DNA of 64,000 nucleotides from sequence record PV764938.1. One strand, given 5' to 3'. Below are positions 13,026-62,999 of this stretch, one piece after another. Numbering within the stretch: position 1 is the first letter of the stretch; the number at the start of each line of letters is the position of its first letter. Position numbers and translations under genes: made by a program. The notes beneath the pieces are model-generated. The model was not told the origin of the DNA, ran no database searches, and worked only from the letters and a program-made list of their open reading frames with translations.

Positions 13026-13414
13026 TGGCCCGCAAGACCAAGGCACAGGAACTCGCAGACTTCTCTGCGCACGTCAATAAGCTGGCCGTCGGCTATGGAC
13101 TGTTTCCGACAACCCTCGTCATGACCCAGATTCTCGACCTCGGCTATGATATTTCCGAGGAACGGCCCGAGAATGTGTTCCAGATCATTATGCTTGCGGT
13201 TACAGAGATCCAGACGCTCTGGGAAACGTATGGCTCCAAGCCCAACGTACTGGTCGACGCAAAGCTCGCAAACGTCCACAAGAGCCTCCAAAATGTCTCC
13301 GAAGAATATCAGATGATGTTCTGGATTGGTGTGTCCAATCACGGTGTGCGGTTCAAGCGCCAACCCGCGTTCATCACCAAGGACATTGCCGAGTATATGC
13401 TGGAAAATTCCTGA
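13025..13414 (+). CDS. hypothetical protein
   Basis: 129 aa, GGAG RBS, TAATG overlap. Confidence 0.7.
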   Translation: MARKTKAQELADFSAHVNKLAVGYGLFPTTLVMTQILDLGYDISEERPENVFQIIMLAVTEIQTLWETYGSKPNVLVDAKLANVHKSLQNVSEEYQMMFWIGVSNHGVRFKRQPAFITKDIAEYMLENS

Positions 13415-13429
13415 TTAAGTACGTACTTG

Positions 13430-13470
13430 TTGACAACTCTAGTTCCTATAAACTAATGTAGGAACTAGAG
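13430..13470 (+). promoter_or_regulatory. promoter overlapped by a 12-bp inverted repeat
   Basis: TTGACA 13430-35 and TAATGT 13454-59. CTCTAGTTCCTA (13437-48) is complementary to TAGGAACTAGAG (13459-70). Confidence 0.6.
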
Positions 13471-13890
13471 TGTGTCACACGGATACAGTGAACCCGGACT
13501 TAGACGGGCACGATGAGGCGCTGCACTCGCGTCGAACGGAACGAGGTCATCCCCGGCCCCATGCAAAAGGACTCCCGGGTAGATGTGGACCGCCGCAAAG
13601 GGTCGCCGCTGCTGATGGCAGTGAGGAAAAGATCAGTGAAATCTCCTTTGATGTTGAGAACTCTGAGGTACGAAGTTGTAGACTCGTGAAGCTACTTCGT
13701 ATTGCACGCGCCCGCAAGGCAGCGTAACCGTATGAGGGTGAAAGCCCTGGATAGCCGGAAGTTGTAGGATCACGCATACCACCTACGCGATATTCCGTAC
13801 ACGAGAAACTATGAAGCACTCGTAGGAAGTCTGTCCCCCTGTTAGGACTTTGCAATTGTTTTTGTTGCGTTGTTCTAACGGGGGGATAAT
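13465..13890 (+). ncRNA. candidate ~430-nt structured non-coding RNA, unassigned family
   Basis: Gene-free interval after a promoter. Helices ACCCGG/CCGGGT, TACGAAGT/ACTTCGTA, GGG-TGAAAG-CCC, ACGAG/CTCGT and a 15-bp hairpin 13833-47/13873-87. GNRA-like loops on the + strand. Confidence 0.55.
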
Positions 13891-13926
13891 AAACATCGCA
13901 TCTGTAGGAAATCATATACGCTTCGC

Positions 13927-14065
13927 TTTTCCCACCAATAGTCCCATCAAAACCCTGATATATTTCCCACCAAATAGCCCACCAAGCCATCCACGGAAAT
14001 AGCCCATAGAGATCTGACATCCATAACCACCCATGGAAAATCCCGGAATAATGAATACTCCGGGA
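13927..14065. repeat. C-rich imperfect direct repeats plus inverted repeat
   Basis: CCCACCAA at 13931, 13966 and 13978; AAATAGCCCA twice; TCCCGGA/TCCGGGA at 14041-65. Confidence 0.55.
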
Positions 14066-55277: not shown

Positions 55278-55495
55278 ACTGCATCGGACGGAAAGTTCGG
55301 TGCAAAGGACTGTATATGCCAGGCGATCTTATCGGACAGGGACGTAATTAACCCCGGGTCCAATTGAGGTAGTTTAAAGGTAAAACGCAGACGGTGACCA
55401 GGGTTCGATCCCCTGGGCGGGCGCTTGCCCGCTACGGTGAAGCCGGAGAGATGCAAGTTTCGAAATCTTGCTCCGATCATAGGATCGTCTGGCGT
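55278..55495 (+). ncRNA. candidate ~220-nt multi-hairpin RNA containing D-arm and T-arm modules
   Basis: TGCATCGGAC/GTTCGGTGCA; D-arm-like TAGTTTAAAGGTAAAAC; CCAGGG-TTCGATC-CCCTGG; CGGGC/GCCCG; GCAAG/CTTGC; CAGACG/CGTCTG. Confidence 0.5.
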
Positions 55496-55508
55496 ATATA
55501 GTTCAAAT

Positions 55509-60031: not shown

Positions 60032-60277
60032 ATGTTTGTTCTCTTCGGCGTAATCTCGCCCTATGATGGTTCCTATATCTTGGGAGTCTTTGACACTCTC
60101 GAGAAGGCTACCGAGGGACGTTCGACGTTCCGAGCCGACTACTGGGCCAAAAACAAGTGCGAGCCCTATGAGTCCTACGAGACTTATGAGCACGCGCTCA
60201 ACGTACTTGGTGAACAGCATCAGCCCGTTGATGTGTTTGTGCCGGGCAAGACCAAGCGACCAAAAGGACGTCACTAA
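60032..60277 (+). CDS. small hypothetical protein
   Basis: ATG 60032; TAATG coupling to the next gene. Confidence 0.65.
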   Translation: MFVLFGVISPYDGSYILGVFDTLEKATEGRSTFRADYWAKNKCEPYESYETYEHALNVLGEQHQPVDVFVPGKTKRPKGRH

Positions 60278-61053
60278 TGCGATTCATTGGCGGCAAAGAC
60301 TATTATGATGGCGTGACGGGTTTCGATACGGATGATCGTATCGTATTCATCCGACAAAACTTCGCCAAAGCGGAACACCGTCCCAAGGACAAAGTCTACG
60401 GATACGAGAGCACGCTGGTTTTCGACAACTACTCGCGCAAATCTCGCTGGAAACATGAAGGTGCTGATCTCGGCACCATCGACGTTATCTTCTGTGGGCT
60501 TCTCTACCGCGGTCTTGTCCGTACGGAGACCAAGTATAACGCAGATGCTGGGCAACACTCTACGACGTATCACTGCTTCTGGGATCACACGTCCGCGCTT
60601 GCTGAGCTTGAACGCCAGGACTGCAAACTCCACGACGATGATTTCGCTTGGAGGCCTCACGGTGTCACCACTGAACGCAAGCGGGTAACGCCTGATACTT
60701 TTCACAAGTATTTCGAACCGCAGCCTTTGCCCCAGCGCATTACGGATATGCTGATCGCCGACAACGTTGTTCACAGCATTCAGCTTGGTATGGTTCCTGA
60801 TTATCATCCCAAGTACACGACGAACTATCCGAAATGGGTCGACAACACCGATGGTCTCAAGGCTATTGGTTTCGCCAGTGTGATCGATCCCTGGCAAGCA
60901 TATCAGCAAATCGATATGTGGCTCGGCTCACAACTTGCACGAGACGAGGACAACATGGTGAAGCTCTCGGATAAAGAGCTGATCGCCAAGCATGGCTTCG
61001 ATAAGGTCAGCTTCCGCAACACGCATCACGCCGGTAAGCCTCGTGGACGTTGA
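60277..61053 (+). CDS. conserved hypothetical phage protein
   Basis: MRFIGGKDYYD...WQAYQQIDMWLG...KHGFDKVSFR. Confidence 0.8.
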   Translation: MRFIGGKDYYDGVTGFDTDDRIVFIRQNFAKAEHRPKDKVYGYESTLVFDNYSRKSRWKHEGADLGTIDVIFCGLLYRGLVRTETKYNADAGQHSTTYHCFWDHTSALAELERQDCKLHDDDFAWRPHGVTTERKRVTPDTFHKYFEPQPLPQRITDMLIADNVVHSIQLGMVPDYHPKYTTNYPKWVDNTDGLKAIGFASVIDPWQAYQQIDMWLGSQLARDEDNMVKLSDKELIAKHGFDKVSFRNTHHAGKPRGR

Positions 61054-61288
61054 GCTGCTTCGTGAATACGCATGGAAGACCTATATGCGGAAGGAGGAAC
61101 TCCTCCCAACGGATCTTCCCGCTAAGAGCTTCAAGCATCATCTGGAATTGCTCGAACAAGATGAGCTTCTCGACGTGTTAATCAAGATAAAATACACGCG
61201 AGAACTCGAAATGGGATGGCATTCTTTGGATGAAATTTATGGGACTCGTACCCGTCGCGCAGTTCAAAGAAATGCAAATCTTTTCTAA
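61043..61288 (+). CDS. small hypothetical protein
   Basis: GTG start overlapping the upstream gene. Confidence 0.55.
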   Translation: MDVELLREYAWKTYMRKEELLPTDLPAKSFKHHLELLEQDELLDVLIKIKYTRELEMGWHSLDEIYGTRTRRAVQRNANLF

Positions 61289-61295
61289 AAACTAA

Positions 61296-61324
61296 TTGAC
61301 GCAAACAGAAGCTCACGTTATAAA
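61296..61324 (+). promoter_or_regulatory. sigma70-type promoter
   Basis: TTGACG-N17-TATAAA with A-rich upstream. Confidence 0.7.
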
Positions 61325-61338
61325 GAGAACAACAAAGG

Positions 61339-61440
61339 GCAACACATAGAGTTGGTCAGCCGGACAAGGCTTCGGTGACTAAATTTAGGTTTAGGGTGGT
61401 CTTAGGATCCCACTACAAGCTGGCCAACATTATGTGTTGC
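61339..61440 (+). ncRNA. candidate ~100-nt RNA: degenerate cloverleaf on a long extended stem
   Basis: GCAACACATA/TATGTGTTGC plus GTTGGTCAGC/GCTGGCCAAC; three small internal hairpins. Confidence 0.55.
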
Positions 61441-61444
61441 TTAT

Positions 61445-61520
61445 TTCCCGATAGCTCAGTTGGTAGAGCGTTCGACTGTTAATCGAATTGTCCCTGGTTC
61501 GAGCCCAGGTCGGGGAGCCA
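61445..61520 (+). tRNA. tRNA-Asn(GTT), canonical
   Basis: TTCGA-CTGTTAA-TCGAA; G-CCA. Confidence 0.95.
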
Positions 61521-62068
61521 ATTGAAGGATGCGTTGATGTCGCATTCCTTCAAGTCAGAAGAGGTTTGCTTTTGGAGAAAGAGCAATCCGAACTGACACT
61601 TATTTGTCCCTAGTGGACATACGGAAGCCTTAGTGCAGCAGCGAAAGCCCACGCACTTCGGGAGGGGGAGAGCAAAAAGGTTTCGACCGAAAAGTTCTCC
61701 CCCGTTTATTCAGAGGTCCGGCACTGACCAAACTCCTGATGGAGGAAACTAAGGTGCCTGGACAAAGCCGGAAGTTGTAGACGAGAACCTCGTGCTTGGC
61801 TCCTTCCGGCTCCCCAATATAGGTAAGACCAAGATATGTTGCTCCACTAAACACGGAGAGTTACACGGTTTGGTCATTGATTCGGCGTGTGGAACGGGGC
61901 CGGGATCATAAACACTTTCCCAAAGTCGGGGTTACATTTAGTAGTTTGATACCGGCGATGGCGGCAGGGTTTTGCGTGTCTTAACTCCTGCTCGTCCAAA
62001 ACTACTCGGCGCGGCCGGGAAATAAGCCGTTGCTCCGTAAAAGCAACACCGGAAGCTGGCAACCGGTT
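61521..62068 (+). ncRNA. candidate ~550-nt structured RNA region, unassigned
   Basis: No credible ORF. TTGAAGGA/TCCTTCAA, GGGGGAGAGC/GTTCTCCCCC, GTCCGGCAC/GTGCCTGGAC, GCCGGAAG/CTTCCGGC, AGTAGTTT/AAACTACT, GCAGG/CCTGC, GTTGC/GCAAC, ACCGG/CCGGT. Confidence 0.55.
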
Positions 62069-62129
62069 AAAAATATTGAACTTCTGGTTCAAGAGCTGTT
62101 AGGATTCCTGAGTAACAAAGGAGTCCACA

Positions 62130-62447
62130 ATGGCAAACATTGAACTAGGAACGCTGAAGGCGGTCGATCGTTACATTGACATGCTGGAAGCAAAAGGGAT
62201 CAAACCCGACAACTGTACGCTTGACGACACGAAGGATCCAACAAGCCTTCCACATATCCTGTGGATGTGCAAGGAACTGAAGATGAAGATTATGCCCTAT
62301 TCGGGTCATGGCTTCTCCGTCGATAAGTTTTCGAGGTGGCTCGGATTTATTCAGGGCATTCTCATCTCGAAGGGACTGACAACAGTCCGTGCAGAACGTG
62401 ACGTAACCCGTAGCTGGTTTACAAGCCAGATTCTGGAAACGGATTGA
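62130..62447 (+). CDS. hypothetical protein
   Basis: AAAGGAG RBS; HILWM...KFSRWLGFIQG. Confidence 0.8.
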   Translation: MANIELGTLKAVDRYIDMLEAKGIKPDNCTLDDTKDPTSLPHILWMCKELKMKIMPYSGHGFSVDKFSRWLGFIQGILISKGLTTVRAERDVTRSWFTSQILETD

Positions 62448-62471
62448 TCTCTCGGGGCTTCGGCCCCATTT

Positions 62472-62548
62472 AGGGGTATAGCTCAGCCAGGTAGAGCAAT
62501 GGTCTCCAAAACCATGTGTCGGGGGTTCGAATCCCTCTGCCCCTGCCA
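62472..62548 (+). tRNA. tRNA-Trp(CCA)
   Basis: ATGGT-CTCCAAA-ACCAT; AGGGGTA/TGCCCCT-G-CCA. Confidence 0.95.
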
Positions 62549-62571
62549 ATAAATACTTTAGCGAAAGCTAT

Positions 62572-62645
62572 TGGGGAATAGGTTAATGGTAGACCAGCAG
62601 ACTCTGACTCTGTTAGTCTTGGTTCGAGTCCAGGTTCCCCAGCCA
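62572..62645 (+). tRNA. tRNA-Gln(CTG)
   Basis: GCAGA-CTCTGAC-TCTGT; TGGGGAA/TTCCCCA-G-CCA. Confidence 0.95.
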
Positions 62646-62817
62646 ATACAGCTTGACACAGTTGTGGTTAGGTTGTAGCTTGAATAGTAGGCAGAACTTC
62701 ACGGGGTTCTGTAACATGAGTAGACGGAGTCCGCTGCAACACGCCCACGCTGTGATGGGGAATGTGCAAACAGGGGTAAACGCGCAGGTCTCATCGTCAA
62801 AACGATGCGCGAGTAAT

Positions 62818-62906
62818 GGAGCATTATACAGCCTGGGAACGCTGTCGGGGCTTGCTAAGCCTTTGGATCCGAAAGGGTTAGGGTTCGATTCCCTATTGCT
62901 CCTCCA
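62818..62906 (+). tRNA. tRNA-Ser(GCT), atypical (5-bp D stem, U73)
   Basis: GGGGC-TTGCTAA-GCCTT; ATCC-GAAA-GGGT variable arm; T-CCA. Confidence 0.8.
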
Positions 62907-62909
62907 ATT

Positions 62910-62935
62910 AAAAAGCGGCCTTCGGGTCGCTTTTT
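62910..62935 (+). terminator. intrinsic terminator
   Basis: AAAAAGCGGCC-TTCG-GGTCGCTTTTT. Confidence 0.85.
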
Positions 62936-62947
62936 CCATTTCCAGTG

Positions 62948-62999
62948 TTGACTTATTCCTGATTCCTGCTAGAAACAGGAAAACAGGAGATCGACTATG
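62948..62999 (+). promoter_or_regulatory. promoter plus conserved RBS cassette
   Basis: TTGACT-N14-GC-TAGAAA; GGAGATCGACTATG. Confidence 0.7.

Follow-up and report, generated by a model that had tools for sequence, protein, structure and literature searches.

We analysed a 64,000-nucleotide (nt) window of record PV764938.1, the genome of Sinorhizobium phage Phosso, and identified a large structured RNA among its transfer RNA (tRNA) genes. Comparison with related phages indicates that window positions 61599-62070 on the + strand, together with optional hairpins at 61521-61597, are a genuine non-coding RNA (ncRNA) of a previously undescribed family of Phosso-like jumbo phages. Window positions equal record positions minus 372000, and the Phosso RNA is located at 433521-434070 of the record. 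The same comparison supports its conservation, structure, non-coding nature, operon position and modularity, as well as the presence of a YrlA-like domain in relatives. The explanation that we tentatively favour for the evidence as a whole is that of an ncRNA of a tRNA operon, with processed ends, which would serve as a modular protein-binding scaffold and have the phage Ro60 protein as a candidate partner.

BLAST comparison with GenBank phages matched the region at 100% to Phosso, a jumbo phage of 469,473 base pairs (bp) that was obtained from soil with S. meliloti NRRL L-50 as host. The RNA falls within a 609-nt gap without annotation (61521-62129), between tRNA-Asn(GUU) and a coding sequence (CDS) of 105 amino acids (aa). 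On the + strand this gap had a folding energy of -223 kcal/mol vs -191 +/- 5.8 in dinucleotide shuffles (z -5.6); the opposite strand gave a z of -3.5. A first-pass annotation, made from the letters of the sequence, had seen no convincing open reading frame (ORF) here, and this was borne out. The longest open frame spans 76 codons at most, and the substitutions relative to three relatives display no 3-base periodicity (26/22/23, 34/31/31 and 30/30/33 by codon position). Indels relative to the same relatives are frequent and mostly of 1-2 nt. The even distribution of mismatches over codon positions, the 1-2-nt indels and the short frames therefore indicate that the region is not coding, and we rejected protein coding on the grounds of the lacking codon periodicity and the many small indels.

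Conservation among related phages

A DNA search found this RNA in no other GenBank phage, and the search was therefore switched to the 258-aa protein encoded upstream (60277-61053). This yielded 19 homologues, the contigs of which were then examined for the RNA. A second search made use of a 24-base degenerate DNA pattern derived from the most conserved block of the RNA, its core. Besides the phage from IMG/VR, which itself holds one copy, the pattern recovered one new metagenome contig (L041, from the JGI metagenomes). No copy was found among 185,579 prokaryotic species genomes, and one more match (L039) was discarded as a GC-rich coding false positive.

Homologous RNAs occur in ten related soil phage contigs (L041, L015, L012, L017, L022, L010, L014, L018, L020 and L021). 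One of these, L010, is a complete 480-kb phage from IMG/VR (genome G001); an additional contig, L013, carries a locus identical to that of L012 and comes from another sample. The RNA starts directly after tRNA-Asn(GUU) in nine of the ten contigs. It ends directly at tRNA-Trp in L010, L017 and L022, and is separated by a small ORF from the following gene or tRNA in Phosso, L041, L015 and L012. Relatives share 77-84% nucleotide identity with the Phosso RNA over about 430 aligned bases, and the neighbouring 258-aa protein displays 56-67% amino-acid identity in the same contigs. The RNA is known so far from one clade of soil jumbo phages only.

Domain structure and covariation

The alignments point to three self-contained domains: a 5' domain (61599-61811), a core of about 90 nt (61822-61909) and a 3' domain (61910-62070). 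About 12 helices across these domains are backed by compensatory base changes; the first-pass annotation had counted at least eight clean helices, which turned out to be an underestimate. Changes on both sides of a pair were found for 19 of the 45 pairs in the 5' domain, 11 of 25 in the core and 11 of 27 in the 3' domain (41 in all). For each domain, 0 of 500 shuffles were as good, and slid controls dropped to 30-49% paired. These data come from about ten sequences of a single phage clade and the statistics partly reflect relatedness, so the shuffle controls overstate significance, a point that counts against our interpretation; covariation is gauged more reliably by the slid controls and by how many distinct pair types occur.

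The 5' domain (alignment A6) is 92.2% paired over its 45 pairs. Its first part (61599-61712, + strand; helices 1-3 and 5) includes a hairpin at 61608-61618 in which GUCC/GGAC covaries with GCCC/GGGC, an invariant GUGC...GCAC hairpin at 61633-61656, and a 10-bp hairpin (61665-61674 with 61694-61703) with 6 of 10 pairs changed on both sides. The second part (61713-61763, +) is formed by helix 6 (61716-61725 with 61753-61763), in which 96.7% of cells are paired and three pairs have double changes. The base of this hairpin, GUCC/GGAC, is invariant, with one bulged U, and its upper stem covaries. The P4-like string GAGGUCCGG at 61713 is part of this local covarying hairpin and not of a pseudoknot. 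The third part (61766-61811, +; helix 7) pairs AGCCGGAAG with CUUCCGGCU, contains a 15-mer shared with position 13753 of the window, and has conserved internal strands GUUG(U)AGAC and CUUGGCUC; five of its nine pairs changed on both sides. The weakest element of the domain is a three-pair long-range closure joining a site near 61661 to one at about 61813 (83% paired), for which a rival local pairing is possible in L015, L012 and L017.

Ahead of the 5' domain, the minimum free energy fold displays two lineage-variable hairpins (61521-61597, +), a 13-bp perfect one at 61521-61553 and a second one at 61554-61597. These have counterparts in L015 and L010 and none in L041 and L012, whose RNA begins at the equivalent of 61599.

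The core (61822-61909, +; alignment A3, eight sequences) is built of a 7-bp helix (61827-61833 with 61869-61875) around a conserved irregular helix, with an inner, apical helix of 4 bp (61842-61845 with 61855-61858). An internal loop with UG opposite AGUU is conserved and is retained even where the adjacent helix covaries, as in L014. A further hairpin (61878-61886 with 61899-61908) closes a near-invariant GUGUGGAACG loop of 10-12 nt. The 25 pairs of the core are 96.9% paired; slid partners reach 33-49%.

The 3' domain (61910-62070, +; alignment A5) has a closing helix (61915-61921 with 62017-62023) and four further helices, with 95.6% of its 27 pairs paired. A helix joining 61925-61929 to 61952-61956 is followed by a variable hairpin. 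Near the 3' end, a hairpin with a CGUAA loop (62029-62034 with 62041-62047) precedes the terminal hairpin (62048-62052 with 62063-62067), the AAGCUGGCAA loop of which is invariant. An extra covarying helix in this domain was seen by eye (AGUAGUUU/AAACUACU in Phosso, AGUGGUUU/AAACCACU in L015); it was left uncounted because the MAFFT alignment is one column off in some rows.

Could this region consist of decayed tRNA genes, functionless junk or a missed protein-coding gene? Pieces derived from tRNAs (T arms and a D arm) do occur in relatives, and the minus strand holds ORFs of 72-74 aa. Against this stand the 77-84% nucleotide identity of the RNA compared to the 56-67% amino-acid identity of the flanking protein, the 41 pairs with compensatory changes, the absence of codon periodicity and the many small indels. 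As far as sequence analysis goes this reading is refuted, and we give it almost no credence.

Separable modules and an insertion junction

Two covariance models were used to trace the parts of the RNA: R1, a model of the core, and R2, which covers the two hairpins nearest to the 3' end of the 5' domain. R1 detected the core in Phosso and in eight relatives at 70-110 bits, including L041, which took no part in model building; it gave no match in L018 or L020. The two complete genomes (Phosso and G001) have a single R1 copy each, at this locus. R2, which includes the 61716/61763 hairpin, matched L041, L012, L018, L022 and L015 and, weakly, L010; it found nothing in L014, L017, L020 and L021. L018 is matched by R2 and not by R1, and therefore represents a 5' domain without core.

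The reverse situation occurs in L021 (2134-2402), a different phage contig in which the core alone appears as a free-standing small RNA gene. It is flanked by a near-consensus sigma-70 promoter (TTGACA-17-TATATT) and an intrinsic terminator made of a hairpin and a U-run, and a homologue of the 258-aa protein is encoded about 1.2 kb upstream. The 3' domain is present in six members of the family and missing from L010, L014 and L021. Furthermore, in L017 the two R2 hairpins come before the rest of the 5' domain. These comparisons indicate that the domains are separable and occur apart in other phages.

Such separability is equally compatible with one large RNA and with several independent small ones, which detracts from our favoured explanation. 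The 5' domain, core and 3' domain could be co-transcribed like beads on a string, each being excised and acting alone as tRNAs do. Every domain is self-closing and no covarying helix connects two of them, and the solitary core of L021 with its own promoter and terminator, the coreless 5' domain of L018, the missing 3' domains and the altered module order of L017 all agree with this idea. Yet the Phosso domains have no tRNA-like or other known processing signal between them, and the order of 5' domain, core and 3' domain is retained in six members. We regard independent small RNAs as a possible explanation, if not a probable one; taken as a question of its own, the chances that the locus yields one stable large species rather than several appear to be about even.

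The junction between 5' domain and core (61812-61821 in Phosso) is an insertion site in L041 and four other relatives. The insert of L041 consists of 87 nt of unrelated hairpins. In L015, L012, L022 and L014, the insert is a tRNA-derived structure of 135-190 nt.

A YrlA-type insert and the phage Ro60 protein

YrlA is a bacterial Y RNA with a tRNA-like domain architecture and, near its 5' end, the Rsr-binding motif GNCGAAN(0-1)G. In the YrlA loci described, the RNA adjoins the Ro60 gene (Chen et al. 2014, PMC4201824). The inserts of L014, L022, L015 and L012 are a permuted tRNA-like domain of the YrlA type. They start with a stretch resembling a variable loop, followed by a T arm (for example GUCGG-UUCAAAU-CCGAC), a closed acceptor-like stem, a UA dinucleotide, a D arm (GCUC-AGCCUGGUA-GAGC) and a 5-bp equivalent of the anticodon stem, which joins the insert to the rest of the RNA. 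The loop on the acceptor-like stem is UUCG in L014, UUUU in L022 and 18 nt long in L015 and L012, and the closed stem covaries (CAGU/ACUG in L015 vs CGGU/ACCG in L012). The Rfam model of YrlA (RF02553) scored the L014 insert at 34.2 bits, with an E value of 7e-6 for that search, and the L022 insert at 19.5 bits, both under the curated gathering threshold of 69 bits.

The RNA might also serve as a decoy or sponge, shielding the phage tRNA supply by occupying host nucleases directed at tRNAs or general RNases. The insert of the relatives, which is shaped like a tRNA, closed at its acceptor end and not chargeable, is compatible with such a role, and so is the setting of the RNA, as the window holds 41 tRNA genes, all on the + strand (ARAGORN). 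The Phosso copy lacks the tRNA-like domain, however, no anticodon-loop mimic was seen, and there is no link to a specific nuclease. We hold this role to be improbable.

The likeness to YrlA bears on the scaffold explanation: Y RNAs are modular scaffolds, and both complete genomes encode a Ro60/TROVE protein. That of Phosso scores 115 bits against Pfam PF05731 and is annotated as 'Ro-like RNA binding protein' (XYS97555.1, record 290301-291965); its gene sits among tail genes, between those for tail sheath and tail tube. Binding of Ro60 by this RNA is a candidate interaction that we consider doubtful. The bolder proposal that the RNA is the Y-RNA partner of the phage Ro60, a giant modular Y RNA produced from a tRNA operon, strikes us as rather unlikely. 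Under that proposal, which has the same low standing in this respect, exchangeable domains (the YrlA-type tRNA mimic or other hairpins) would tether Ro60 to differing effectors or substrates during infection.

Several observations weigh against Ro60 as the partner. The Phosso RNA gave no YrlA match at E values up to 10, and the tRNA-like domain with its T arm, closed acceptor-like stem and D arm is absent from 61521-62129. Unlike in YrlA loci, the Ro60 gene is not adjacent but about 140 kb away, and the corresponding part of the RNA shows no conservation of the Rsr motif GNCGAAN(0-1)G. The sole near match to that motif is a hairpin with a GAAA tetraloop at about 61640-61650, which has other loops in L015 and L017. 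The string GGUCCG at 61715, in the 61716 hairpin, resembles the vertebrate/metazoan Ro-binding sequence GGUCCGA and is not found in L010; we rejected it as a recurrent Ro handle, for its frequency, both in the window and in the two genomes, is that expected by chance. No RtcB gene turned up in Phosso or G001. The Phosso RNA also differs from YrlA in being five times longer, and its 5' and 3' ends form no Ro-binding stem.

Canonical YrlA was not found anywhere in Phosso, a search of the whole genome returning weak matches on ordinary tRNAs only. One of these, at record 171934, falls on an ordinary tRNA whose anticodon is CUA. A match in G001 (130776-130896) proved to be an artefact of two adjacent tRNA genes. 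Another possible Ro60 handle, a stem with CAGCAA (TTACAGCAA), is at chance level in the window and does not occur in this RNA. Elsewhere in the window, at 55309-55502, a D-arm-like AAAGGUAAAAC precedes a T arm and a closed stem, and a AGGUAAAAC-CAGA string is similar to the beginning of the L010 core; this element may be a separate Y-like RNA. A gap of 510 nt was observed near the Ro60 gene (record 288243-288753).

Comparison with described RNA families

The RNA is of a known general kind, the large structured phage RNA beside tRNA genes, and matched none of the described families with which it was compared. At gathering thresholds, Rfam 15 reported only tRNAs in the whole window. For 61200-62950 at E values up to 10, it reported no large-RNA family, RNase P, tmRNA or intron, and ARAGORN called no tmRNA here either. 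The families ROOL, GOLLD, OLE, HEARO, raiA, RNase P, tmRNA, group I/II introns and 6S were set aside, as none had an Rfam match. ROOL had been named in the first-pass annotation as a family to check, and the undescribed family suggested there is supported. Mimicry of ribosomal RNA (rRNA) was likewise rejected: nine family members compared with the 16S, 23S and 5S rRNAs of E. coli by sequence similarity, not by fold, gave a best E value of 0.057, with scattered matches of 15-40 nt, none of which is common to different members.

GOLLD and ROOL invite comparison, being RNAs of several hundred nt with many helices that phages encode beside tRNA genes. The Phosso RNA might accordingly be an 'ornate' RNA-only assembly, a homo-oligomer in need of no dedicated protein. 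Its size, its dense helices, its invariant loops (AAGCUGGCAA, GUGUGGAAC and CGUAA) and its position at phage tRNA genes all resemble GOLLD/ROOL (PMC12286853). In contrast to these families, the RNA has no sequence or structure match to any large RNA in Rfam 15, has separable domains and has so far been found in a single clade of soil jumbo phages only. We saw no self-complementary kissing loop, and the modular loss of domains speaks against one fixed architecture. We judge an assembly of this sort to be unlikely.

Phage T4 offers another parallel to the scaffold RNA of a tRNA operon that we propose. Its species 1 and 2 RNAs are small stable non-tRNA RNAs that lie in the phage tRNA cluster and are released by tRNA processing enzymes. 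The Phosso RNA resembles them as a structured non-tRNA RNA embedded in a phage tRNA operon; the T4 RNAs differ in their length, which is at most about 140 nt, and homology to them was not found.

No description of this RNA was found in Rfam 15 or in the searched literature. The paper on AP-J-162, a related Sinorhizobium jumbo phage, reports tRNAs, one tmRNA and a single miscellaneous RNA; searched by terms, it yielded nothing on non-coding RNA or a Ro/TROVE protein.

A shared 15-mer and a second RNA at 13.7 kb

The first-pass annotation had inferred one large RNA or several smaller ones, possibly of an undescribed family shared with an RNA that it placed at 13.5 kb. A large structured ncRNA, or a string of modules, of an undescribed family in a tRNA operon is supported, and the kinship is not. 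The 15-mer AGCCGGAAGTTGTAG on which the kinship was built does occur as exact copies at 13753-67 and 61766-80, and at both sites it opens a helix, as had been claimed, forming the 5' strand of a covarying helix each time. At 61766 this is the AGCCGGAAG/CUUCCGGCU helix of the 5' domain, and at 13.7 kb CGGAA pairs with UUCCG, with a compensatory change in G001.

Beyond this string, little unites the two RNAs. Local alignment produced only a 21/24 match around the 15-mer, and the residual likeness amounts to a 5' strand of roughly 10 nt (CCGGRAGUUG), the 3' halves of the hairpins being different. R1 had no match at the 13.7-kb RNA, even with all filters off. R2, the model that covers the 15-mer hairpin itself, found nothing over 13300-14000 with filters off, its best score being 5.8 bits, away from the 15-mer. 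The usual form of the motif in relatives is GUUGAGAC and not GUUGUAGAC; the extra U that gives the 15-nt identity occurs only in Phosso and L012. The shorter GAAGTTGTAG has three copies in the window, all within these two RNA regions. Genome-wide in Phosso its count does not exceed that of its reversed control, and the first copy in the 13.7-kb RNA (13672) is not conserved in G001. Exact repeats of at least 15 nt number 18 on the + strand of the window, and about eight show no evident link to tRNAs; a single shared 15-mer is thus at background level. With the negative results of R1 and R2, the 15-mer is therefore an isolated, chance-level identity with no structural alignment around it, and we rejected the kinship. 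A 15-mer common to two structured RNAs of a 64-kb window should not be read as kinship.

The 13.7-kb RNA (about 13430-13890) resembles the present RNA in being promoter-driven, conserved, structured and unannotated, and in using GCCGGRAGUUGUAG as the 5' strand of a hairpin; it differs in having no other alignable segment. In G001, it is found with 74-77% identity over about 480 nt (window 13420-13900) and a conserved promoter. As an example of compensatory change, its hairpin GAGGG-UGAAA-GCCCU is replaced by GUCAGC-GCAA-GCUGA. The region 13380-13950 gave no match to a large RNA, RNase P, tmRNA or intron of Rfam 15 at E values up to 10. It looks like a second new RNA, unrelated to the one at 61521-62070.

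Proposed processing and function

The RNA was said in the first-pass annotation to follow a strong promoter (61296) and tRNA-Asn, and this position was confirmed. The promoter of the transcription unit (61296-61324, +), read from the sequence, consists of a -35 box TTGACG (61296-61301), a 17-nt spacer and a -10 box TATAAA (61319-61324). The arrangement recurs upstream of tRNA-Asn in L022, and L041 repeats the -10 box and the downstream leader. A consensus scanner did not list this promoter because it demands a T at position 6 of the -10 box. The leader (61331-61444, +) forms one long hairpin (about 61337-61442) and is homologous to those of L041 and L022. It is followed by tRNA-Asn(GUU) (61445-61520, +), which has an encoded CCA and scores 64.1 bits with the Rfam tRNA model (ARAGORN also detects it).

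Beyond a conserved and structured RNA in a tRNA operon, every step of the following scheme is one that we infer. Transcription from the promoter at 61296 would yield tRNA-Asn and the RNA on one transcript. RNase P would take the hairpin leader off tRNA-Asn, and maturation of the tRNA 3' end would release the RNA with a 5' end at about 61521. Its 3' end would lie near 62070, ahead of a promoter-like site of the downstream ORF, and in relatives at the RNase P site of tRNA-Trp. We consider it probable that the ends are set by enzymes of tRNA maturation. The product would be a chain of independently folded domains, between which further modules are inserted in other phages. The invariant loops and the internal loops, including UG/AGUU, look like candidate binding sites. 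Collectively, these features suggest a stable trans-acting RNA that serves as a protein-binding scaffold, for which the phage Ro60/TROVE protein is the best single named candidate partner.

Environmental data bear on this scheme. A soil metatranscriptome (X9) includes low-depth contigs of a relative with roughly 90% identity, which span 61314-61582 and 61693-62323; such contigs of an RNA library may stem from contaminating DNA and cannot show RNA ends, which lessens their value for the scheme. A soil DNA metagenome (X2) holds Phosso itself and a variant that joins 61901 to 62467, placing the core directly before tRNA-Trp as in L010.

The metatranscriptome contig that crosses the junction of RNA and ORF, together with co-transcription with the tRNAs, could also be taken to indicate a cis-acting element, either a leader or riboswitch of the 105-aa ORF or a platform for the processing or stability of the tRNA transcript. 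This ORF (62130-62447, +; phrog_7775) lies outside the RNA, between it and tRNA-Trp. A leader or riboswitch is unlikely because the ORF is absent from L010, L017 and L022, in which the RNA is kept and abuts tRNA-Trp. In addition, the ORF has a promoter-like site of its own (62076-62105, +; TTGAAC, 18-nt spacer, TAGGAT, read from the sequence), an arrangement kept before the homologous ORF in L041, L015 and L014, and the core is a free-standing gene in L021. Overall, a cis-acting role seems very unlikely. For the trans-acting scaffold, the promoter-like site likely marks the 3' limit of the RNA.

Neighbouring genes and further elements

In the deposited annotation, tRNA-Asn (61445-61520) is followed by the hypothetical 105-aa CDS at 62130 and by tRNA-Trp, tRNA-Gln and tRNA-Ser. 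The tRNA-Trp(CCA) gene (62472-62548, +) is the downstream limit of the RNA in three relatives. The 105-aa ORF resembles a cassette inserted between the RNA and tRNA-Trp. For the proteins flanking the RNA, no informative family was found. A further unannotated stretch of about 170 nt (62646-62817), with a TTGACA-like site at about 62656, separates tRNA-Gln from tRNA-Ser.

Two observations concern the tRNAs themselves. In L022 (6510-6550), a truncated 5' half of tRNA-Asn, comprising the acceptor strand and the D arm and closed into a hairpin, lies directly before the intact tRNA-Asn. In Phosso, record positions 171983-172058 (L029 1550-1622) hold a well-formed tRNA of 67 bits that is annotated only as tRNA-Undet and has the amber-reading anticodon CUA. 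It is situated between two genes, a hypothetical one that follows the gene of cysteinyl-tRNA synthetase and another that precedes the gene of seryl-tRNA synthetase.

Implications

The locus adds an RNA family of about 500 nt, supported by covariation and new to Rfam 15 and the searched literature. Jumbo phages have large translation-related toolkits, the RNA components of which are barely charted. The unusual trait of this family is its separable domains, with a tRNA mimic of the Y-RNA type that is swapped in and out at a single junction. Phosso is cultured and encodes its own Ro60; therefore, the targets of a viral Ro60 and the reason for the presence of large RNAs in phage tRNA operons are directly testable in this phage. 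If the proposal of a giant Y RNA were true, it would represent a new, virus-run branch of Ro60-Y RNA biology.

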